From Saccostrea echinata (Eukaryota): a stretch of DNA of 64,000 nt. Positions 1 to 60,391 of the stretch are shown piece by piece; the stretch's first letter is position 1; every line of letters begins with the position of its first letter. The stretch lies in contig NW_026889754.1 in assembly GCF_033153115.1 (NCBI RefSeq), positions 17,670,001 to 17,734,000 on the forward strand, given 5' to 3'. The notes under the pieces are model-generated. The model worked only from the letters and a program-made list of their open reading frames with translations, made no database searches and was not told where the DNA came from. The position numbers and the translations under genes were made by a program.

Positions 1-547
1 GTTGTTTGGCTGAAATTTGCTTCATCATAGAGAGCGACCCCCTTTCCCCCTTTCCCCACCATATCGCTATACATTGCATTTATTTGCTTCATCAGATGTA
101 TTAACCTTACATTTCTTATTCAAAGATGCTTTGATGTCCTCCTTATTTAATAAAAGATATTATATGTAATTCAAATTTTAATATTTTCTACTTGAAGAAC
201 AAAGCGAAAAAAAAAAAAACCCTTCGTATTTGTTATGCTAGATTTAACCTTCCTTTCATACACATTATCATTTATAGAACACCAATTACCGCTTTTCATC
301 ACTGAAATATGTTAGTACAAGAAAAATCTCTTTATACGTTGCTCGTCAATAAAAGGTCCAATGGTTTTTAATAATTTTCCTAAAGAAACCATTTAACCTA
401 CCGAAATGAATACTAGGGTAGCAAAAGGTTATCACACAATTCCACTTGGAGCAGATCAAATCTGGGTTTTATGGAGGAACCATTTTCCTGTTAAATCAGA
501 TGAGGAATTTGGTACAGAAGTAGAAAAATCATATTCCTTTCGATATC

Positions 548-3500
548 TTAATATCTCACCACTATGAACTTTCGAGGACCAGATATAACTCTGAAATAAT
601 ATGACCTTCTACTTGTTGTCACTTTAATAGGGTTTAGTGACCTACAACTGGACCCCACAACCCCTTCCAGACCCACATTAACAAGATAACGAGTATTGTT
701 ATAAACAAAAACGTTGACTAAAAATGAAAGTTTGAAAATTTTTATTTGCATGAATATCGGATTAAGATAAAATTTTAAAATAAAATGAACAGTTAATATC
801 CTGAAAAAAAGTCATGATAACTAGACCCTCCTTACCTGCATGTGATACAGATCCATCAGCGGACGAAGTTACTGAAAGAAAATGTAATTCTTAAAAATTA
901 TTCTATGACATTTACATAATTGCATGACATTTTTTATAACAAAAAATTTGTTTTGACCAGATGTTCTGAACTCTACCATTCAAACAAAGGGGACCTTCCC
1001 ATCCAAGTTCACATCCCTGTTCACAGATTCCTTGGATCTTTGAGCAGGATGTACCATTTTTACAATGGCCACAGTCAGATGAACAGTTTGATCCGTACTT
1101 GTATTCCAGACATTCTGAAAGTCACAAAAATGTTCTCATAACTTAAGGATGTTTAAATCAAAGATTTTATGTCAGATAAGCTTAATATAAGCTTTTGTGT
1201 CAATGTTAAAAAAATCCAGTGACAGCTGCATTTCCAGTTTGAAGGAAGTTTGCCTGAGTTTCTCCACAGGAGTCTATTCTTCTTTTTTAATGATGTTGTC
1301 ATAAAAAAGCTTTCCATTTTTGGGGGATTTCTTTTTTTTTTTTTATTTTCTTGATATATTAATATGACATATTTGTTGTCTTTCTTAGTTTTATATAAAT
1401 GAGTTCCTTGTTTTTGTCTTACTTGAAATGGTTAATGAATGTACATAAAGTCGAATTCTTTCAGAAAGGAAACGTATGCAGCTTTTTTTTTTTTTTTTTT
1501 TAAATTTCTTATGATATTTCTAGAAATTTAGTTGAAAGCTCAACTAATGTATATGTTAAGAATGGATAGAAAAATAACGAATTATGTTAGCTTAGCAAAT
1601 GTAAAACACTTAAATTAAACTTTTAAACGCAATCAGGTGATTGTTGAGAAACTGAGTAAATAAACATTTATTGGCATAAAAAACGGATTAGAAGTAATGG
1701 ACAGGATTTTATTCTTCATTAATTTCTTGTATGATTTTTATACACACTGCCTGAGGATGGTGGAACTTAAATTTCACAGTTTGTACATTTTTTTACGAAA
1801 AACAGATAAATGAATCTCTCAATATTTGAAAATCATTGGCCATAAATTGAAGAATCTTGAAACGTCAATGTTCCAACAGATTTACTTGTTTTCTCATCCT
1901 CTCCACGTATAATAAGTTAATTAAAACAAATTGATATACCCGATACAGAAATAAATTTTTTACATGTAGGTATATGGTTGAAATTTGTACTGTGGGTTTG
2001 GAGAATGAATAAGAAATGTGATCAAAAACACACCCTTTTCACCTCAGGAAACACGACAGGCGAAACTGGATTTTAAAAAATTATTACACCAGTGAAACAG
2101 ATTCTATAAAATAATTTACCATCACATTTCGAACCACTCCACCCTTCTTCACATCCTTGAGGACAGAGCCCGGTCAATTTGTCACAATGTGTCCTATTTA
2201 AACAATTTCCACAGCTTTCCTCACAGAATTCTCCGTAATACCCATTTACACATGCTGTTATGAAAAATAGAGTGATTTTTTTTAGTTTGTATCTTTTTCT
2301 TGTTGTCGAAAGAAAAGTCAATTGTTTTCCTTTAGATAATTTTGCAAAGAGTTAATGTATAGGTCGACTCTAATTGTCAAAGTTGATCAAATTGGCAATA
2401 AATGTATCCCTTCCCTCAAACGGTTTTTAAAAATAATTTTTTTTTTTATCTTATTCGATTTCTTACAACAATGAGGTTGTTCCATAGAGGTGTTGTTGCA
2501 CCCATATATACAAGAACCATTGAAAGCGTCGCATTGTCCATTGTGGCATCTTGGATTGCATGATGTACAGTTTTCTCCATAATGTTGGGATGGACATCCT
2601 TAAAATAAATTCAGATCAAGCAAACGAGTTAATTCCTTTGGATGACAGTACAAAATGATGAGCAAAATCAACATTGTGTGTCTAGTATGTCTTCACCTGC
2701 TTTGTCGTTTTTAAGAAAACATTTTTCGCGTGTTTTTTTTAAAGATTGATATTGATTTAAACTGATTTTACAGAATGTTATCCAAGTCAACATACCTATC
2801 ACATTAACTTCACATATCTCAATAGTAGCGAATGAAGGTTCATATCCTGTACAACTTGTTTTTAGGGGAGGATCCTTAGAGTTGTACAAAGCTATGCCCT
2901 GAGTCACTTTATTGACGGTGATGTTCATAACACGGCTGGGACAGGTTGAATGATCCTGAGTGAACACTCTTTCTCCAACACAATACGGTGGAATAAAGGA
3001 AGACTCATTGAACACAAATACCGAGAATCCTGTGTTCCTGTTTATAGCTGAAATTTTAGAATATACAAAATAACATTCCTTCTATATTGATTTTATTCAG
3101 TACTTGAAAGAAACACAGATAGTGATTTGATTTATTGCAAACATTTATAGCAGGAGAAATGTTAGGGACGGAGGAGGGTAAATAACGGTGGAAAGTATTC
3201 ATGCGATCACCATTTTGTTTTCTTATATTTATCAATATCACATTGATTTCTAAAATGCATGTTCATGCAATTCTTCAACCAAATAAAAATATTTCTATGC
3301 CTTCAGGTTTTGATATAGCAAGGATGTGTTTTGAGCAATAGTATCCCTTGACCATGCCTTTGACTTTGCCAATCCACCAATAATTTTACATTTATAAAAA
3401 AAAACAAATAGTAAAATATTAACATTCAGTGTAATTTTCTTTATGAATTCCATTTCCAATCGACGAAGTTCAAATCTCTAAAACATACGCGAAATCTTGT

Positions 3501-6500
3501 CACCGAGCGGTAGAATACACAGTAGGAAATATATGCATTTTCAATACTCTTGGAACACCAAAATGTATATTGTTTTGGCTCAATTTAATTAAAAAAAATA
3601 CCCTCGTAAATTATCGTAAAATTATAACAACTGTGCGTTTAAAATTAATTTGTCATCGTTTTTTCTCGAAATGTTCATTTGCGTTATTTAGCTTTCCAAC
3701 GTCACAAACGGCTCTTACGTCTATTAAGCACACCAGTTCTAAAAAGGCGATAAATTCATATAAAAGATAAAGGCAACAAACAATTATGAAGAGAGAAAAT
3801 TTGTGAATGTATAATTATATAATAACGCGCGGTATTCACGACCGACGATATAAAAAAAAATGCAATGCTTAATTAAATCACAATTCTTAAATGACATTTG
3901 TATAGGAAAACGAAAAACTTACTTGAATTTCGGAAAAAGATTTCCAAATAAGCTACATTAGACATGAGTTTTAGCGATAATTTCCACCAAGCCTCTCTGT
4001 AATGATCCTTAGCAAGGGTTAAGCTACACGTGCTTTCACCACGCTCCTCTTCAAGATATCCGTCAACTGCTTTGTCTGCTAAGTTAGTTACGTAAGAGTG
4101 ACTCTGTGATGCCACACCGGAATAAGCGTTTTCTTGACTAAGATTTTCTGCAAGGAATTCACACATCTCTTACAATATATTTCATTACAAAGATATAATT
4201 TTAGGCTTCTTTTTAAATAATTTATTATTAGCAGGTATTTGATTTATAATATGTTTTATTCATTCATCACATGTAATTCTGAATGCTCAAAAAATAACAA
4301 AAATATGCACGAAAGTTTTTTTTTATATGTGTTAGTTTCCAAAGTATGCTATGGGCCGATTTTCCCCGAACCTTGAAATATATATTGATGTTTACCTGAC
4401 GCACAAGTAGAGAACTGTACGCGCTTCATGAAATATGCCTGTGTGACAAGTCTGTGTGATTTACACACCAATAACTCACACAAAACTTAAAAACATTCCT
4501 TAATTGAGGGTATGCCCTTGCAATATAACGATTTATTACGACACTTCTATTACCCTTCAATGAATCTGCATACAAAGATACGGCAGTATCGCTTGTCTAG
4601 AGAATGTACGGGAAGTATATGAATAAAATCATAAAATAGACATCGCATCCAAGTTGATGGCCTCTTATATATCTGCAAATAATATTTTATTCAATTACAA
4701 AATACATTTTTCATTGTATAAAATATAACTTAATCCGCCTCTCACTGCTTACAAACTGCGTCAAAGAGCAAGGGCCATTCAGGTCTTTTTTGGCCCCATT
4801 AATTTCTGAAAAATTAAAACTGCGTACTTTTAGTCGACAAGGCAATAAATATCACTTAAACACTTGATGACTGAATTTCTACTAAAATTGACGTAATTTT
4901 TTTTTGCTAGTCAATGCATTATGACGTCATGAATTGCTTCATTATTCATATATTCCGAATATTTCCTTAAAAATGGCCAAAATATGATGCTATTTCAATA
5001 TTTTGTATAAATCACAACCTCCGATCCATAATGTGCAAATATATTATGAAAGAACTGCTTATTAAGATTACAAAACATCCTTTAATTTTTGGATCAAGCA
5101 GCGTGCTCATATTTTAATTCTTTGTTGAAGGTTCTAAAATTCACCTGTTTTCTGCAAAATTCAAGAACATTGCAATTTCACACAACCTGTTTTCCAGTAC
5201 CTGGACTCTTTAGAAGAAACCTTTATATACAAACTGAAAGTGCAAAGTCTCTTCTTTATATATTGATGTTGAAAAAGGGACACAATGTGTAAGTGGATAA
5301 ATTGGTTTATCTACAGGGCCATTTTATGCATAAAGTGAACCTAGCTCTTTTACGATATGACGTCACATTGACAAGTGCATTGCGATCAATGAATCGTTTA
5401 TATATTGCTGTGTGGGATTTAACCAACGACAAAAATACATGCAATAGTACGTACTGACGTAGTTTAAAGCTATCCTACAGATTAAAATAGCAAATCATTT
5501 CATTTTGTGGTAATTTGAAGAACATATACTTTTGTGTGATGTCATAGTAAGCATTTCCCGTATCACTCGGCACACCTCGGTCGATTCGAACCTCAATCTA
5601 TCCTCGGCTGTATCATGTAAACTTCCATTGAACCGGAGCTACTTTATACGCAAGATGGCTGCGCCCTACATTAACACGTGCACAGTGTGCTGAATTCGAT
5701 CCGTTAACAAACATGTGATTATGTAAAGATACTAAGTACATTTTTCTTGGTAAATGTTATTCTTAGTGTTACCTAAATGCTTTTGAAAATTTTTATTGTA
5801 CATCATATGCATGTTTATTATCGTTTTCAAAGCGTTACGTTTTCCCTAAGCGGTAAACTTGCAGCCTTATCACAAATGTTAAGCGGAAACGCATATCATG
5901 TTTCCTCGTACAGCCGAGGTTTGATGAAGGTGACGAATCAGCCGAGGTTTGCCAAATGTTCCCGTATAAATTCGGCCCCGCCTCCTTATTGTAGCCTTAA
6001 CTGTGCTGCGTACGGCCAAATGCAGAACCACGGGGTCTGGAGGAAACTAGGCCCCTAAATGCAAGGCATGCATGACCCACCGGTGAGTGGATATGCCCTT
6101 GTGTCTGCAAACCTAGCCCCTAGCTATGGGTCAAATAGCCTCACTGCCTTGTAGGAAGGCTTAGGAAAGTCAAAGGCTATGGAAGAAAATCCAGACAGAA
6201 AATTCGTGTACATGGGCAGGAAAGCAATTAAACACAATCTTCTAAGGGAAGGACAACCCTGAAAGAAAACCACTGGCCCTCCGAGTTCAGAGGGTTATGC
6301 TAAGGGCCAGCAACCCTAACATGGAAGTCTCTGGGGACGGCCTAATATGCTGACCAGCACGAAGAGGACTAAGTAAAGTAAGTAATACAAATAGCAGAAA
6401 TTTCAGAAACAGCCAACATTCATTCTTCCGTGGGACTCCGATTCATCCACAATACGTGCAACATCGTCGAGATGGTCCGCCGTTTCCAATTTATAATTAT

Positions 6501-9500
6501 TTCGATAAGTATTTAGAAGATACAATGGGACTTGGTACTCATCTCTAACCAGTATTTAATTTAGTGACACTAACAAAGTTTACCGATGGTGTGTCAATTA
6601 TTTCATCATTTAATTATTTATAAATTATTATTATTATTTTTTTTTTATAGTTTATTGTTTTATCTTTTCATTATCATTTTTTTTCTTTATTTTTATTTTA
6701 TTTTTTTTTTATTATTATTTACTTTCTACTGTCGAATAAATAAATTTTATGCACACACTAGTCGAAAGTAAATTTTACACACACTTCCATTATTTCTATG
6801 AAATAAAACTTTCAGGTCATGAACCACGCAATAGGAATAAACACCCATTCTATATTGTGAGCAGCCTCCCTTTAAGACTAGTTTTCTGCTGTTAATTTAA
6901 TACAAAATTTTTCATCCAAAAGCTCTCCTGCCCTACTTTATGTGTTGCATTACGATTTATCCTCCCCTCCCCCTCCACGTGTTGCATTACGATTTATCCT
7001 CCCCTCCCCCTCCACGTGTTGCATTACGATTTATCCTCCCCTCCCCCTCCACGTGTTGCATTACAATTTATCCTCCTTTCCCCCTCCACCGTTTTATATA
7101 TACACAAGCTTGAAATCTGACGTTGAAAAACTGCTTTGCTGCGATGAGACAGGCGGCGCATTGGACTATGCTCAAATGTTCTATACTTGAATCCACTCCT
7201 TTCAAGGCCGTAACTTTGCTCAAATTTTAGTGAGGCAAGGGATCTGAGACCACTCGAGTCCCAAATGAGTCCAAGATAGTGTCCTGAAAGGTGTTCGTAG
7301 TGGGTGGGTGAGTTACCGAAAGCTGGGTTTTAGTCAATTAAGAACTTAATCTTTGAAGTTTTTCTGTTTTTATTTATTTACATGCGTTCTAAACGATAAT
7401 GAAGCACCTGGTGGGATGATCAATTTACTGAAATTGAAAAAAAAAATTGAGGTTTTAATTTACTACGAAGACACACATAATTAATTAAAGTTAAAAGTAA
7501 AACTTTCTTCACTTTTCAGAAAACTTCAGAATTTTAGTGAGGCATTTACCTCACTTGCCTCAATGGTAGTTACGGCCTTGCCTTTAGAAACGCATGAGTA
7601 ATTAATGTCTACACCGTAGCAAGCCACGGGTTTTGTGCCTATTCTTTTCCACTTCGGAAATCAAATGAACCCAAAATCCATGACTTGCGACGGTGAAAAG
7701 TCTGGTACCATATGGATATCTTTCCCGGTCTTCAGTATATTAAAACGACAGAAGCGGTTTTTTTTCTAAGTATGTTGAGAAGTGAACTAAAAAATCGGGC
7801 AGAAAACGTTGTCAAGTGAGACTGTGCTACTCCATTTGAGAGGGCAGACGAAAAACAAATCCATAGAAATATAGGACTGGTGATATTTAATCATTATTAT
7901 TGGATACTTGTACGTGTCTGATTTTATGCGCATATTTTGATAATAAATCCTATTATGAAAATAATATTTTTCACAGTTATATCTTCAATGCTACAGATGA
8001 ATCAATTTGATTATGGTAATTAGGGTATTTCCCACAGGCACTTGTTTGGTATATAGGGCACCCCCTCCTTTCTCTTTTCACAAGATGTAACTCAATTTCA
8101 GCTCAACTCAATTTCACCCCCCCCCCTCTTCCTTCCACACACACATACACTTCAAGCTTGTATTTTATTAATTATCAATTATTAACCTTATTTAACATGA
8201 AATTGTTCGCTTTGAGAGACTTTTTTCCTTTTCTAATAAATCGCTCCAGACGTCCATCGTCGAGTGTCTATTTCAAACTACTCATTTATTCCTCGATTAT
8301 TACCTCAATACATTTTAAGGACTTTACAGAAGATACATCAACTTCTGGTAAGAGTTATAATATACGATAAAATAAGAGTCTTCGAACTTTTCATTCTGAG
8401 CCAAAAAAAAAAAAAAAAAAGAAAAAAAAAAAGAAAAAAAAAACTTAACCCTTGAAGAAAGATGGGAGAGGAGGGGGTGGTTAAGGCAAGGCAGTTTCCT
8501 TATTCAATTTTCTTCAGATACATGATTCTTCTTACCATTTTACAAGGGGTCCGTTTTCTTAAAAAGGGGTGTTTTCCAAGGTCAATTTTTCGTTACTTAA
8601 CGTCAGAAAGTTATTACGCTAAAAAATCAACAAGGGGGAGGGGGCCTCTAGACCTCTCAAAATTTGATATATGAGGCGGATCTAAGTTAAGAAAACTTAT
8701 ATAAAGGTGTATGATGGTATATTTCACACCACTGGTATTTGAATATAGGCAATGTTACGGAAATATATCTTACATATAATAAACTTATGTGCACAGTGCT
8801 CATAATGTACACATGTGATTCGAAATACCCTAATCTGTAGAGAGCTACATAAGTATGTTCATAATTATTTTTTTTTCATTTTTGCCGTGCAATTGCAGTT
8901 TAATTAAAAGCAATTTACATTTAAGGTTTTTTTAAGCTTGCTACATTGTTATTATATAATATTTTATGTTTCATATATCAACGACATAAGACAACTTGTC
9001 ATAAAAGCTTCTTAAACGGTTATTCATCGGCAAGGATAGGATCGTAAGTTTATTGATTAGGCCGGTGTAAAGACGAATAATGAACCCCATAGAATAATGA
9101 CCGGGGTCATTTTTTAACGACAAAAAATGATCCCCCAGCCGTAGAAAAAAAATAATTTTTTGAAGAAAAAGAGCCCTAGGGGTCATAATTTTATATGTGC
9201 GTCCTATTCAAAATTGCCCCCCCCCCATTGGAAAAGAACCCCTTTTCCAAAAGAGTGAAACACAATTTATAACAGGTGATTGATGCCAAGATTTGAACCT
9301 TAGTGTTTAATACTTCTAAAGTTATACCCTTTTTGATCAAAACTGGACGAAAGCGCATTTAAAATGCAGTAAAACAGCATTGCATTTACATGCATATTTC
9401 TATCTTTTAAGCCTACTGTGTTCTCAGCAAATCGCAAAATGGCTAATATTGGTTATAACTCTTAAGGTAATCTCCTTTTATGACTGTCTTCCATTTGTTT

Positions 9501-11916
9501 CATATTTGGATATTTGACTGATTATAGACATTCATATCTAAATAATAGACAAGCGGGATGTTCTAGGTTCTCAATAGTAATTCAGCATGCTTTGAGTACG
9601 ATCAACTTTTTTTTAAAAAAGTGAATAAAAAAATGAATGAGATAAGTTTTTGGAAATAAATGTGCAATGTAATATGAAAAAAAAATATTTTGAATGACAT
9701 AAAAAGCTGTGCAAATGAGGTAGAACATCGCAAATGACATAATATCACGTGCGAACGACATACTGTGGATATATTTCCTAACGATAAAAAAAAGGTGAAG
9801 ATAACGAACAAGGATGATTTTAAAATATCCATAAACTATACAATTCTGTTTATAGGGCATAAAAAAGGACCCCTGAAAATTTCAGAGGTACATGTAGGAA
9901 CAGGTGCCTAGAAAGAGTAAACATCCCCTGTTGACCCGTCACACCCGCCGTTAGCCCTATGAATAAATCAGGGGACATTCCGTTGTCGAATTTAGTATAG
10001 AAAAAAAAAAAGCCAAGCAGGTGACCCACTTATAAGTTATATTTGTTAACAGGGTCATTGATACGACGATTGAATTTAGGAAATGCTGACTTAAAACGAG
10101 GTTGTTTAAACACCTGTAACATCACGTTACATGTATCTGTCAGTAGCCTGCCTCGATTTAAAATTAACCGTGTTCTTGGGTATCGAATAATTTGGTAGAC
10201 GTTAACATCATATGCAAATGATTGCGGAATATTACTACATAAAGAAGGAAAGCTGAGGATGGAAAAACCTGAAGTCATCCCGCTTGTCAGACAATTTAGT
10301 TGTTATTTGGTCTTTTCGTCTATAGTCAGTAGGACGTCCAAATATTAAGCAGACGTTGCAGACATAAAAAGGACATGAAATTTCTGCATGTCTGAAATAT
10401 ATACAACCGTATAATATGCATTCAATTTTATTTATAAACAGTGGTCTGTGGTAATTTCTTTTCAAATACTATAGGAATAATAAAGAAGAATCCCAGTAAT
10501 AAACATATTGCTACGCCTGACATTTTTATTTTCTACATTGCACAAAAACTAGATTTCAAATGCAAAATTAACACTGTTTATGCTTATGATAACTCCGATT
10601 CCATCACAAATGTAAATGTAAACAAGAAACTTGACATGTTTGCTTGAAGACCTTACTGTTATTCTTAGGTTTCTTTTCCACTATTTTTATTATTGTTTTT
10701 TTCCTACCAATTTTGTGCACGCGAGCTCTCGGAAACGGCTCATTTGATTTTCATGAAACTTTCAGGTCTGGTAGAACATCAAAAAATCTAGATATATATA
10801 TTTTTTCATTTTGATGACGTCACTTCTTGTCCGGAGATTTCTGCGATTCAGTGATATTTAGAGGGTCACTTTGTCCGCTCGTTTTCTAAAGAAACACTTA
10901 TAATAGGAACTTGATATTTTCAGTGATGATAGAGCAATGTTTATAAATGTGTACTTAGTAGTTCATCTTCCCGGAAGTGCCGCACGTTGGCGCTCGGTAT
11001 GCTCTGAAAATAGTCATATTGAGATTATCAAATTTTTTAGCATTTTTTCAAGAATATCTCTTTACTTGTAAATATTTTGTTAAAACCTATTGAACAAAAG
11101 TTGTGCAGAATGAGAAGCTCTTTCATTTGATATCAACAAATAGGGGCTGGCCCCTAAAATAAGGGATCTACAAGGGCTAAAATATTTTTCTTAATATCTC
11201 AAAAACTATTGAGAATTTGTGATACATCAAAGAAGCAAAATTGTTCAAAATGACAAGTAGAAGCGAATAAGATTGTCGAAAGTCGTCAAATGACGTCACT
11301 TCCGGCCAAAACGGAAGTAGTTAGAAAATGAATATTTTTACTGTATTCGACATATTATTGGTTAATTTATGTAAGCAGAAGCGTCCAACCAAATTTTTCA
11401 TCCCTCGACATCACTTCCGGTCAAACCGGGAGTAGCCAGAAATAGCTTATTTTGCAGGTTTTGATGCAAAACTGAAATTTTAAAGTCACTGGAGACGTCT
11501 TAACTCATTCCTTTCTTTTGTTGACGTCCCTTCCAGTCAAAACAGGACGGAAGACTCGTTGCTTTGCAACGAGCTTTGTTCAAGCTATCTTTTTATTTTT
11601 GTTTGTAATAGTTGCTAATTGAGTCATCTCCAGTGCAGAGTTGTGCAAAGTACAGCGGTAAGGTAAATTAAGGAAACGCGGGGTGATTCGACACAGTGTA
11701 AATGGTATTTTTCCAACAACCACTTGGACTACTGTCACAAAGTAAATGGTGATATATACATGTGGCTACTTGAAATATAAACGTTTTTGTACTTTTGAAT
11801 GCATGATAACATAAAAAAGATATTTGAAAGATTTATTTATCACTTACATGTATCAGGACAAGATATATTGAGGAATGATAAACTTGTACGTAGTGCATTC
11901 TGAACCATGCAACCAT
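548..11916 (-). CDS. Gene B: paralogous F-type-lectin-like + 3 EGF-like protein (MEGF/SCARF-like); 3' end uncertain
   Basis: Exons 11848-11916 (MVAWFRMHYVQVYHSSIYLVLIH, tentative), 4396-4438 (AYFMKRVQFSTCAS, tentative), 3923-4147 and 2796-3047 (lectin-like), 2467-2598, 2120-2254 and 977-1114 (EGF), 836-871 (VTSSADGSVSHA), and a candidate last exon 548-717. Clear homology to gene A, e.g. [11 protein letters not shown] and [14 protein letters not shown] are identical. Confidence 0.75.
977..2598 (-). CDS. Gene B EGF-like exons (2467-2598, 2120-2254, 977-1114)
   Basis: [34 protein letters not shown]..; CVNGYYGEFCEESCGNCLNRTHCDKLTGLCPQGCEEGWSGSKCD; ECLEYKYGSNCSSDCGHCKNGTSCSKIQGICEQGCELGWEGPLCLN. 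All are phase 1-1 with GT-AG boundaries. Confidence 0.9.
2796..4147 (-). CDS. Gene B F-type-lectin-like domain exons (3923-4147, 2796-3047)
   Basis: GVASQSHSY..ADKAVDGYLEEERGESTCSLT..AWWKLSLKLMSNVAYLEIFFRNS|TINRNTGFSVFVF..IEICEVNVIG. Intron positions are the same as in gene A. Confidence 0.87.
4766..5347. mobile_element. Non-autonomous Spy-like DNA transposon (582 bp)
   Basis: Termini GAGCAAGG...CCTAGCTC are flanked by AAA and TTT with no TSD. An inverted copy lies at 28415-28991. Confidence 0.7.
5569..5953. mobile_element. MITE with ~45-bp imperfect TIRs
   Basis: ggcacacctcggtcgattcg..cctcggctgta versus tacagccgagg..cgaatcagccgaggtttgcc. Confidence 0.55.
5974..6385 (+). mobile_element. Short non-autonomous RTE-clade retroelement derivative (5'UTR fused to 3' tail)
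   Basis: GC-richer island with an RTE-5'UTR-like stretch (ggccctcc..gagggtt..gggccagcaaccc) and a 3' end acgaagaggac(taag)n. Confidence 0.45.
6942..7090. repeat. 37-bp minisatellite, ~4 copies
   Basis: Repeats of gtgttgcattacgatttatcctcccctccccctccac. Confidence 0.9.
7203..7580. mobile_element. MITE
   Basis: 13-bp perfect TIR CAAGGCCGTAACT/AGTTACGGCCTTG, with CCTTT on both sides and an internal repeated ttttagtgaggca. Confidence 0.7.
9860..10315 (-). mobile_element. Degenerate Penelope-like retroelement fragment
   Basis: Frameshifted TTKLSDKRDDF../FSILSFPSLCSNIP..AY..QIIRY motif typical of the C-terminal part of PLE RTs, followed by the common gtgtgac(c/g)ggtc(g/a)acaggggatg..ggcacctg segment. 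Confidence 0.65.
10643..11580 (-). mobile_element. Helentron-type non-autonomous element (HINE-like)
   Basis: gaagacctt subterminal motif, (TTA)n tract and terminal hairpin ctcgttgc-ttt-gcaacgag. Same architecture as 30010-32124 in the opposite orientation. Confidence 0.55.
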
Positions 11917-12280
11917 TGAAATTCCCGACAAGGTAATGGTTCATTCTTAATTATAAACTATAGACAAATGATTACAAAATGTGCTACAAATGCAATCTTT
12001 ATATTTTTAACTTATGAACAGATTGTATCCCGTACGAATTTGTTTGTGTTCGCATTTGAAAAATAAAAGGTGATATATACTTTTCCTACGAAAATGCTGT
12101 GTATAATCATGTACGCTAACGTATTTTTATTTCCGGACTTATTATTTATAAAAAAAAAAAATTAATACTGTTCCCACTCAATAACCGTTAAGCCAATAAT
12201 TTTATACACAAAATATTAAAGTGATTATGCATGGGAAAATATTTAATTTGATCAAAGTTTACTGATTTTCAATAAAAAAT

Positions 12281-12523
12281 AGTCGCCCGCGTGGGGCAGT
12301 GGTTAGGGCGTTTGCTCTAGTGTCGCGGTGTAAGATGATCTTTCGGACGAGATAGTATAAACGGATGTTCCGTGTCGCAATAGGTGCTGGCACGAAAAAG
12401 ATCTCTGCTCAATGGCCCTGAGTGCCAATTTGCAGCCCTCCACCGGCAAGTGGTGGCGTCTCCATAAGAGTAAAAAATTCTCGAAAGGGACGATAATAAA
12501 CAAACAAACAATCAAACAAACAA
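12281..12523 (+). mobile_element. tRNA-derived SINE
   Basis: A-box gtggggcagtggttag, shared core ctgctcaatggccctgagtgcc and a (CAAA)n tail. Confidence 0.75.
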
Positions 12524-13928
12524 AACAATGAAAAAGATTTCGCTGAGCAGCTGGTGTTTAGCGTAGTTGTGTGACGTCACCATTGCATATTACTTCATTT
12601 TTGCATAATTATAAGTAGCTTTGATCTCATTGTAAACAAAACATAAAGGACTTCCAAAAAAACATTGTTCAAAAATCGTAAAATTTCTCGGTCGTTTATA
12701 GCAGAGAATAACGTACTTTGTTCTTTATGTTTGCTTTGGACTATTCTTTGAATTTCATGATTATATCACCGAGCAAAATTAACATTTTTGAAATAAATAA
12801 CTTCAAACTTCTTATTATATTATACTAAATTTGGGCGTTTATCTGTTAAATTCTCTATCTATTATTATTGTGTGTCCACTGTTTAATTGATTGTGTCTCA
12901 TTCTCTTTGAAGCAGGATTAAGACATTCCAGTTGACTTTGAGTGACTGTCAAAAGAATTGATACTCGTTAGGTGTAAATGCCTCAGGACCTGTTAATCTT
13001 ATATCAAAAACTTTGTTTATATAATTAATTAGCATTTTTTTATGTCCATTCTATCAAAGAAACACACCTGTCCATCAATTAATTCAGCCAGTGTCATAAT
13101 TCAGTTACTGTTTACTCTCTATCTAGCAAAAATCTATTTCCATTATACCTTCTTCAGTTTGGAGGCCCGATGCTCGAACGGCCACATCCTACTTGATGGG
13201 ATAAAACTTGTAAACTATTGTTGAAATTCATGTTGATTGTTATTTACCATCTTCTATAGTAAATTCGGAAATCTGATTTTACCAGTTCTTGGACTTTATA
13301 TTGGAAGACCAAAAGGAATACGGCACCTTTCTTATTTCCATTATAGTATGACCCACAGCGCTGCTACATATTACCCGCCAACATTCCCTTTTCCCAGTTT
13401 GTGCTTAAAATGCGAATATAGTCCACGAATTGCTTTTATAACTTTATAAACAAAATCTACCTGGTTATAATTACATTAATCTACAAAAACGCACTTTTGC
13501 TTGAAATGTTAAAGCGCGTGTGATACAGAAGTGAATGTCTTTAACCAGAATAAATACATATTTTTTTTCAATGCCTTGCAACAAAATACATTACCCAGAC
13601 ATTTTGCTCCGCCAAGAAAAAGAAATGCAAGATAAAATGACGTAATGGATTTCTCCATTTTGCGGCTCTTTTAATCCACAGAAACGTTCCACTGTGAAAT
13701 GACTAACGAAAAATGAGGAAGTATATTTTTTTAATTGTATATTGACACTAGGCATGTAAATTCGATTAATTAATTACATGTAACAATAGAAAATATAAAC
13801 ATTTACCTGAGGTCAAGTAATTTCTTCCTCAAACTACACATGCATTTGTATATTTTGCTCAGCCTGATCTCTCGAGTTTCATTATTTGAAAAGGACACAT
13901 GCAAATGAATCTGAAAGACAGGACTTCG

Positions 13929-60391: not shown

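Follow-up and report, generated by a model that had tools for sequence, protein, structure and literature searches.

A predicted receptor tyrosine phosphatase and a neighboring short receptor with a paired-tyrosine tail in a tandem gene family of the oyster Saccostrea echinata

Results

A 64,000-nucleotide window of the 923-Mb genome of the oyster Saccostrea echinata (G000:C5:17670001-17734000; ~33% G+C) was analyzed. The window is the whole stretch of DNA at that length; positions below refer to it, and negative positions precede its first base. Two genes, A and B, lie in tandem on its minus strand, as the initial annotation of this DNA had it. Read from its exons, gene A appears to encode a type I receptor tyrosine phosphatase with a lectin-fold head, a 13-EGF stalk, a transmembrane helix, a first protein tyrosine phosphatase (PTP) domain with an intact catalytic motif (D1) and an inactive second one (D2). 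Gene B encodes a membrane protein, also of type I, in which a related head is followed by three EGF domains, a short serine-rich linker, a transmembrane segment and a tail of ~70 amino acids (aa), and it has no phosphatase. We are highly confident of this anatomy. A long phosphatase receptor beside a short, phosphatase-less paralog had been described at this locus; the layout stands, but the two heads are related (~65% identity) and not the same. The practical outcome is a corrected gene model, in which gene B ends beyond the window edge and its protein is anchored in the membrane. The closest named proteins were exclusively from oysters; searches for A and B were performed exon by exon or with database proteins.

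Gene B and its 3' end

RNA contigs from four runs were mapped to the region from window -1499 to 3000 (L001), of which 5-13% of the sampled words were present in each run. Five GT-AG joints (CT..AC on the forward strand) were found in these contigs, at 2796/2598, 2467/2254, 2120/1114, 977/871 and 836/-232, and they bear out the three EGF exons and the 36-nt serine-rich exon that had been read from the sequence. The last joint (L001 1268 to 2336) connects the serine-rich exon to a terminal exon beyond the edge of the window and is present in runs X3 and X4. In run X1, from the other sample, a contig stops at the same point with a 15-nt overhang that is the end of the serine-rich exon. One contig passes through the gene B stop into the 3' untranslated region (UTR). 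The terminal exon translates to a transmembrane helix and a tail ending ...YSEVDSVEEDPDYLEIHL, followed by the stop; the tail end of this exon is ...NTYSEVDSVEEDPDYLEIHL. The features of gene B are as follows.

13595..13658, minus strand: candidate exon 1, with a signal-peptide-like start and a phase-1 GT donor; found by pattern search, resembles the N-termini of P0021 and P0063
3923..4147, minus strand: head exon 1; from sequence
2796..3047, minus strand: head exon 2; donor confirmed by the RNA joint L001 4097/4098 to 4295/4296
2598-2467, minus strand: EGF1; from RNA joints
2254-2120, minus strand: EGF2; from RNA joints
1114-977, minus strand: EGF3; from RNA joints
871-836, minus strand: serine-rich 36-nt exon; from RNA joints
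1..835, minus strand: last intron within the window, continuing past the edge to an acceptor at window -231/-230
start at window -232 (G000:C5:17669768; L001 1268), stop at L001 972-970, minus strand: terminal exon with transmembrane segment and tail; from RNA joint

The initial annotation had ended gene B within the window, through an acceptor at 717, a TAA at 550-548 and an AATAAA at 84-79, and had proposed a secreted or non-signaling decoy. All three elements exist, but they fall inside the last intron and are unused in the RNA contigs; contig depth from window -149 to 750, which spans the proposed exon 717-548, was zero in all four runs. With neither RNA support nor a Pfam match, this exon was rejected as the main 3' end of gene B, and the decoy gave way to a protein whose RNA contigs splice position 836 to an exon with a transmembrane segment and a tail resembling an ITAM (immunoreceptor tyrosine-based activation motif). 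A continuation of gene B past the edge to transmembrane and PTP exons had also been considered. The transmembrane exon was indeed reached, but tblastn with the gene A PTP exons detected no PTP exons between the gene B stop and the next head, ~17 kb downstream.

The gene B tail reads YSEV-x8-YLEI, two YxxΦ motifs eight residues apart. The consensus for an ITAM, as worded in an excerpt of PMC6994640, is YxxL/I, 6-8 (up to 12) residues and YxxL/I. Because the first motif of gene B ends in V, the tail is named 'ITAM-like' throughout.

Gene B starts, at its candidate first exon, ~1 kb downstream of the gene A stop. With the last coding exon of gene A and candidate exon 1 of gene B only ~1 kb apart, the 3' UTR of A and the promoter of B must nearly touch, and A-B read-through transcripts are conceivable. 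A GAT-rich microsatellite lies in the 3' UTR of gene B at L001 836-927 (window -664 to -573) and was passed over as a repeat in the contig mapping.

Gene A, the long phosphatase receptor

The 13 EGF-type exons, the transmembrane exon and the two PTP domains that had been assigned to gene A were borne out by open reading frames (ORFs), hydrophobicity and Pfam family PF00102. Its features are listed here.

60322..60391, minus strand: exon 1, ATG at 60391, with a signal-peptide-like start and a phase-1 GT donor; from sequence reading
59929..60159, minus strand: head exon 1, encoding the lectin-like domain's first half; PF00754 at 19.9 bits, under the cut-off, and 64-65% identity to the gene B exon
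56906..57160, minus strand: head exon 2; 65% identity to the gene B exon over 83 aa
39282..56740, minus strand: stalk of 13 predicted EGF-type exons; from ORFs and cysteine patterns
56740-56606, minus strand: EGF1, with a GC donor
55778-55644, minus strand: EGF2
39413-39282, minus strand: last EGF
38849..38954, minus strand: transmembrane exon with a phase-2 donor; from an in-house hydrophobicity scan and sequence
37640..37774, no strand: N gap in the intron between the transmembrane and juxtamembrane exons, with repeat DNA on its flanks
36034-35928, minus strand: juxtamembrane exon with a phase-2 acceptor and a phase-1 donor
34754-34606, minus strand: second juxtamembrane exon with a phase-1 acceptor
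23522..26994, minus strand: D1 exons; from tblastn, Pfam exon by exon and sequence
19361..22029, minus strand: D2 exons; from Pfam exon by exon and sequence
about 14713..14781, minus strand: last coding exon

Searched exon by exon, PF00102 scored 33.1 and 46.6 bits on D1 and 26.3 and 31.3 bits on D2 (cut-off 20.9), and the homolog P0013 scored 356.5 bits. An HCx5R motif together with a WPD loop forms the catalytic signature of a PTP domain. In D1, the motif is intact as VHC/SAGVGRTG, where the slash marks a phase-2 intron, and the WPD loop is there (WPDHD); D2 reads VISKDGAGVTG, in which the catalytic cysteine is replaced by serine and the arginine by valine. The exons of gene A share 60-85% identity with named oyster receptor protein tyrosine phosphatases (RPTPs).

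A single transmembrane helix lies between the ectodomain of gene A and its PTP domains, in frame with the juxtamembrane exons. The transmembrane exon is kept in L2 (61%) and L3, two long paralogs in the same array, and the juxtamembrane exon at 36034-35928 shares 56% protein identity with the matching L2 exon. As the transmembrane exon has a phase-2 donor and the next exon a phase-2 acceptor, the assembly gap between them is intronic and the frame is continuous without it; L2 has the same transmembrane and juxtamembrane exons in the same order. The gap may nonetheless conceal a small exon. The flank on its right, 301 bases long, is a repeat of which at least 105 copies were scored in the genome (1359 first-look candidates), and the left flank matches repeat DNA of an L3 intron. 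At 37775-38385 a unit of ~350 bp occurs twice, ~351 bp apart, with copies 93-96% identical over many contigs; this flanking repeat is often arrayed with a period of ~352 bp (e.g. on C29, C25 and C9). The 350-bp repeat probably accounts for the gap. A tRNA-derived short interspersed element was rejected as an identity for the flank, ARAGORN having found no tRNA in 37000-38400.

Within the stalk, a three-exon EGF cassette is repeated three times in tandem, from about 53260 to 42284.

Exons shared by genes A and B

The two head exons and EGF1 are common to A and B, as had been noted, and intron positions and phase 1 are equal at both ends of each head exon and at the EGF1 acceptor. The claim of equal positions does not extend to the EGF1 donor, which in gene A lies 3 nt later and is GC: the intron there is apparently of the GC-AG kind (CAG/gcaag, 56604-56605), one codon past the GT donor of gene B. 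Amino-acid identity between A and B is 64-65% in head exon 1, 65% in head exon 2 and 68-70% in EGF1. P0006, a protein model of the same species with no PTP domain and no transmembrane segment, is closer to gene A over the three shared exons (84%, 76% and 80%). The pairing of A with B is therefore not a close one.

The head domain

The head structure was taken from an AlphaFold model of the family member P0003, which is neither A nor B, built with 34 aligned family sequences (pLDDT 84.2, pTM 0.80). The top Foldseek matches of this model were CBM32 modules and F-type lectins (4zz5, 3cqo, 2j22, 3lei and 1k12; E-values 1e-8 to 7e-7, target-normalized TM-scores of up to 0.81); for the F-type matches 3cqo, 1k12, 2j22 and 3lei alone, E-values ranged from 2e-8 to 7e-7. 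Pfam returned F5/8-type-C matches on the head, all below the cut-off. The fucose-binding motif of F-type lectins, given as HX24RXDX4(R/K) in an excerpt of PMC5712786, was present in 0 of 29 heads, and a cation-type hhDGx motif was present in 27 of 29 (14 in its strict form). The head is thus modeled as an F-type lectin/CBM32-like fold without the fucose motif. It is rare: exon 2 matched 53 of 1.84 billion representative proteins at E <= 1e-3.

Tyrosine tails, tail switching and stalk length

The tails of 19 short forms were compared; four came from the S. echinata genome, and the other 15 belong to database proteins from several species of oyster. The pattern Y..[LIVM]-x6-9-Y..[LIVM] occurs in 17 of them, with exactly x8 in 16 and with strict L/I in 12. 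Shuffled tails gave means of 0.51 (loose), 0.14 (x8) and 0.14 (strict), and the observed counts were reached in 0 of 2000 shuffles. The tails of gene B and of its downstream neighbor, gene C, share ~28-29% identity. Short-form tails diverge fast, and the tyrosine motif alone is kept. The possibility that the gene B tail is a widespread exon was rejected, with eight genome matches at E <= 0.01.

A maximum-likelihood tree of head exon 2 was constructed from 32 rows (25 database proteins with known tails and seven local genes) and 84 columns; 28 database matches without a transmembrane segment were excluded as fragments. The PTP and ITAM labels require 9-10 changes on this tree, compared with 10.4-10.6 for shuffled labels, and the starred (supported) branches force at least seven. 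Supported sister pairs with opposite tails, from several species, were P0060/P0070 (100/99), P0073/P0077 (99/83) and P0059/P0075 (96/88), and a group of gene A, L2 and an ITAM-type protein has support of 99/94. The 3' cassette, and with it the tail type, has been exchanged repeatedly relative to the head phylogeny.

Seven independent PTP/ITAM pairs could be drawn; the PTP form belonged to the longer stalk class in 4-5 of them and to the shorter class in none (two-sided sign test, median p 0.0625). Median stalk length was 374 aa in 10 PTP forms and 242 aa in 15 short forms, with overlapping distributions.

The gene family and its clusters

At least 68 genome matches to head exon 2 were obtained, of which 30 fall on C5, 37 on C17 and one on C33. 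In both clusters, at 17.36-18.54 Mb of C5 and at 0.98-2.76 Mb of C17, PTP exons are interspersed with the heads. PTP exon matches number at least eight within the C5 cluster and at least 10 within the C17 cluster. The DNA covered in detail comprised 324 contiguous kb of the ~1.2 Mb C5 cluster, counts beyond it being lower bounds; three long and at least four short genes lie there, along with fragments. Along the minus strand, broken copies come first, followed by a short gene whose tail is B-like, another short gene, L3, L2, remnants of a very short form, A, B, C and D. Short genes end in a YKYG-type EGF exon followed by a single exon for transmembrane segment and tail, whereas long genes end in a different last EGF, a separate transmembrane exon and PTP exons. 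This is one large tandem oyster family in which similar heads are joined either to 'last EGF, transmembrane segment and PTP-PTP' or to 'YKYG-type EGF, transmembrane segment and ITAM-like tail'. Long and short forms as isoforms of one gene were rejected: tblastn with 12 queries (10 tails and two EGF exons) detected no ITAM-tail exons inside A, L2 or L3.

Several members of the array are damaged or minimal. Gene C (window -17140 to -25908; L005 and L006) has the same head, ~5 EGF exons and a transmembrane exon with the tail YDEL-x9-YHEI-x8-YQEI; its head exon 2 has an in-frame TGA and a conserved cysteine changed to phenylalanine, and the gene is probably either a null allele or a pseudogene. 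Several head fragments in the array also carry stops. Between L2 and A, at G000:C5:17736384-17740054 (window +66.4 to +70.1 kb; L010), head fragments are accompanied by a transmembrane-plus-tail exon whose tail is 50-62% identical to that of P0001, a 300-aa family member with a single EGF. These fragments are a minimal short form or a remnant thereof.

On C17, a copy (L002, G000:C17:1508545-1513035) matches the first 1500 bases of the window at 98% in DNA and gene B at 100% (head exon 2) and 99% (tail) in protein; PTP exon spacing differs from that on C5. The C17 cluster may be a haplotype copy or a segmental duplication. A 48-aa PTP exon query had more than 150 genome matches, with dense tandem runs on C6, C27, C18, C48, C58 and others, and receptor phosphatases overall are greatly expanded in the S. 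echinata genome.

The genes themselves are already predicted publicly under generic names only: such oyster genes are called RPTP kappa-, epsilon-, alpha- or T-like, MEGF10, cell death abnormality protein 1-like (CED-1-like), SREC-like (scavenger receptor class F) or laminin beta-1-like. A full-text literature search, judged on abstracts and with supplementary gene-family tables outside its scope, retrieved no description of molluscan RPTPs and ITAM-tail receptors with a lectin-EGF ectodomain in common.

Discussion

The anatomy of genes A and B taken together with a paired ITAM-like/phosphatase receptor logic is, in our judgment, the likely explanation of this locus. The initial annotation had also read A and B as paired receptors. 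That reading survives in an altered, family-level form, in which gene B is an ITAM-like counterpart and not a decoy. It is hypothesized that the heads would bind a glycan-like surface ligand and that Src-type kinases would phosphorylate the paired tyrosines of the short forms, so that a Syk/Shark-type tandem-SH2 kinase could be recruited, as with Draper/MEGF10 and the oyster receptor CgIgR. The long forms would either deliver a phosphatase to ligands of that kind or, being taller in the stalk, be kept away from close contacts, and by either route they would set a threshold. This would amount to a paired-receptor logic whose inhibitory enzyme is built into the receptor in cis and not brought in by an immunoreceptor tyrosine-based inhibitory motif (ITIM). 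Two sets of published observations serve as precedent. In an excerpt of PMC6219719, the Draper ITAM recruits Shark and the bulky RPTP Ptp69D is excluded from the contact; in one of PMC6994640, an oyster immunoglobulin (Ig) receptor with an ITAM binds CgSyk, placing an ITAM-Syk pathway in an oyster. By analogy with such systems, functional antagonism between long and short forms is possible, although we would put it at less than an even chance. The fuller proposal is more tentative still and, as a whole, rather unlikely: a hard-wired oyster paired-receptor system, in which a lectin-fold head is carried either on an ITAM-like tail or on a tandem phosphatase with a taller EGF stalk, and in which ligand sets the balance of kinase and phosphatase by co-clustering or size exclusion.

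Several points weigh against the anatomy and the paired-receptor reading taken together. The heads of A and B share only ~65% identity, far under that of classical paired receptors, and may therefore not see the same ligand. The first tyrosine motif of gene B is YxxV and not the canonical YxxL/I, although the second motif and the spacing fit an ITAM. The double motif is absent from two of the 19 tails, P0066 and P0063, the latter being the nearest named relative of gene B. As the tails are homologous, the shuffle test shows conservation and not independent recurrence. On the head tree, 10 of 29 inner branches are unsupported and the alignment has 84 columns. Stalk length had been suggested to segregate the two proteins at cell contacts; PTP forms do tend to be longer, but the trend is not significant. 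The four RNA runs, in the form of Logan contigs, come from a single study with two samples and are labelled 'RNA?', their RNA status being a guess; such contigs give no abundance and no cell type and may miss a rare secreted isoform.

The strongest alternative, which we regard as a real possibility short of even odds, is that A and B are neighbors with independent functions (adhesion, development or scavenging) in a fast-evolving tandem family, where gene conversion or unequal crossing-over would mix the tails and long and short forms would not antagonize each other. Exon shuffling is common in tandem arrays, and this one is rich in fragments and broken copies, gene C with its in-frame stop among them; the modest identity of the A and B heads and the non-significant stalk trend are likewise to be expected of such neighbors. 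Less easily accommodated are the supported branches on which tail type flips at least seven times, the close PTP/ITAM sister pairs in several oyster species and a double-tyrosine spacing that is kept though tails are otherwise ~29% identical. These flips and the kept spacing fit selection for both outputs on similar heads.

The short tails might instead hold YxxΦ sorting or endocytosis signals, with gene B an uptake receptor of the SREC/MEGF10 kind and no ITAM docking; we consider this unlikely. YxxΦ is also the AP-2 sorting motif, the first motif of gene B ends in V, and relatives go publicly under names such as MEGF10 and scavenger receptor class F. A single sorting signal needs no fixed spacing, however, and x8 is fixed in 16 of 19 tails, with a third YxxΦ eight residues further in several of them on reading by eye. 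Receptors of the Draper/MEGF10 type, moreover, signal through ITAMs (excerpt of PMC6219719).

That gene B ends in the 717-548 exon with the AATAAA at 84-79, as a secreted or non-signaling decoy, is very improbable. The acceptor, stop and AATAAA do exist, contigs may miss rare isoforms, and the same-species relative P0006 is modeled without a transmembrane segment; against this, contigs leave the proposed exon at zero depth in four runs and join 836 to -232 in both samples, its ORF has no Pfam match, and paralogs of the same 3' layout end in transmembrane-plus-tail exons. Scarcely credible is a gene B that is a decaying pseudogene copy, as its neighbors are broken (the TGA in head exon 2 of gene C, stops in several head fragments) but all examined gene B exons are open and spliced at GT-AG in RNA contigs, and the C17 copy is 99-100% identical in protein.

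Paired activating and inhibitory receptors are held to be a hallmark of vertebrate innate immunity, with inhibition through ITIM-recruited phosphatases. If the paired-receptor reading of the oyster family is true, a mollusc would have evolved the same logic independently, with receptor and phosphatase fused in one protein, as an invertebrate counterpart of KIR-type pairs and of CD45/ITAM kinetic segregation combined in one gene family. With a shared head on stalks of different length, the family would then be a natural test system for kinetic segregation, and dozens of genes that in oysters go by no more than 'MEGF10-like' or 'RPTP kappa-like' would gain concrete functions.

Comparison with known systems

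Draper, CED-1 and MEGF10 resemble gene B in being type I proteins with an EGF stalk, putatively of the same MEGF/laminin type in the oyster, and a short tail with paired tyrosines, and they recruit a Syk-family kinase through an ITAM. All stalk exons of the oyster genes have the MEGF/laminin-type cysteine pattern; PF00053 scored 19.5-27 bits in family proteins (cut-off 21) and 12.1 bits, below the cut-off, in EGF2 of gene B. The N-terminus differs, being of the EMI/Nimrod kind in Draper, CED-1 and MEGF10 and a lectin-fold head in the oyster family: Pfam gave no match to the EMI domain in the exons of A and B or in 10 family proteins. The tyrosines Y934 and Y949 of Draper are 15 residues apart, as stated in an excerpt of PMC6219719, compared with the x8 spacing in gene B. 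NPxY, in its commonly used definition, is absent from the gene B tail, and ENPxxY is present in some paralogs.

The phosphatases CD45, RPTP alpha/epsilon and Ptp69D resemble the predicted gene A protein in having a signal peptide, a large ectodomain, one transmembrane segment, an active D1 and a degenerate D2. Their ectodomains are of fibronectin, Ig or MAM type, whereas gene A has a predicted lectin-fold head and MEGF-type EGF; unlike that of classical RPTPs, the ectodomain of gene A is shared with non-phosphatase paralogs of the same cluster. F-type lectins and CBM32 modules resemble the oyster head in predicted fold and hhDGx motif, and differ from it in the fucose motif and in Pfam scores, which stay below the cut-off in the oyster head.

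The vertebrate paired receptors (KIR, Ly49, PIR, SIRP, Siglec-5/14 and CEACAM1/3) are, as described in excerpts of PMC3533184 and PMC5112662, clustered and fast-evolving, with related ectodomains, opposite tails and repeated tail exchange, and in these respects the oyster family is like them. They are built on an Ig or C-type lectin fold and the oyster proteins on lectin and EGF, with A and B heads only ~65% identical. The vertebrate activating arm borrows its ITAM from an adaptor, where the oyster arm would carry the ITAM-like motif itself; the vertebrate inhibitory arm recruits SHP-1/2 through an ITIM, where that of the oyster would be a covalently fused phosphatase.

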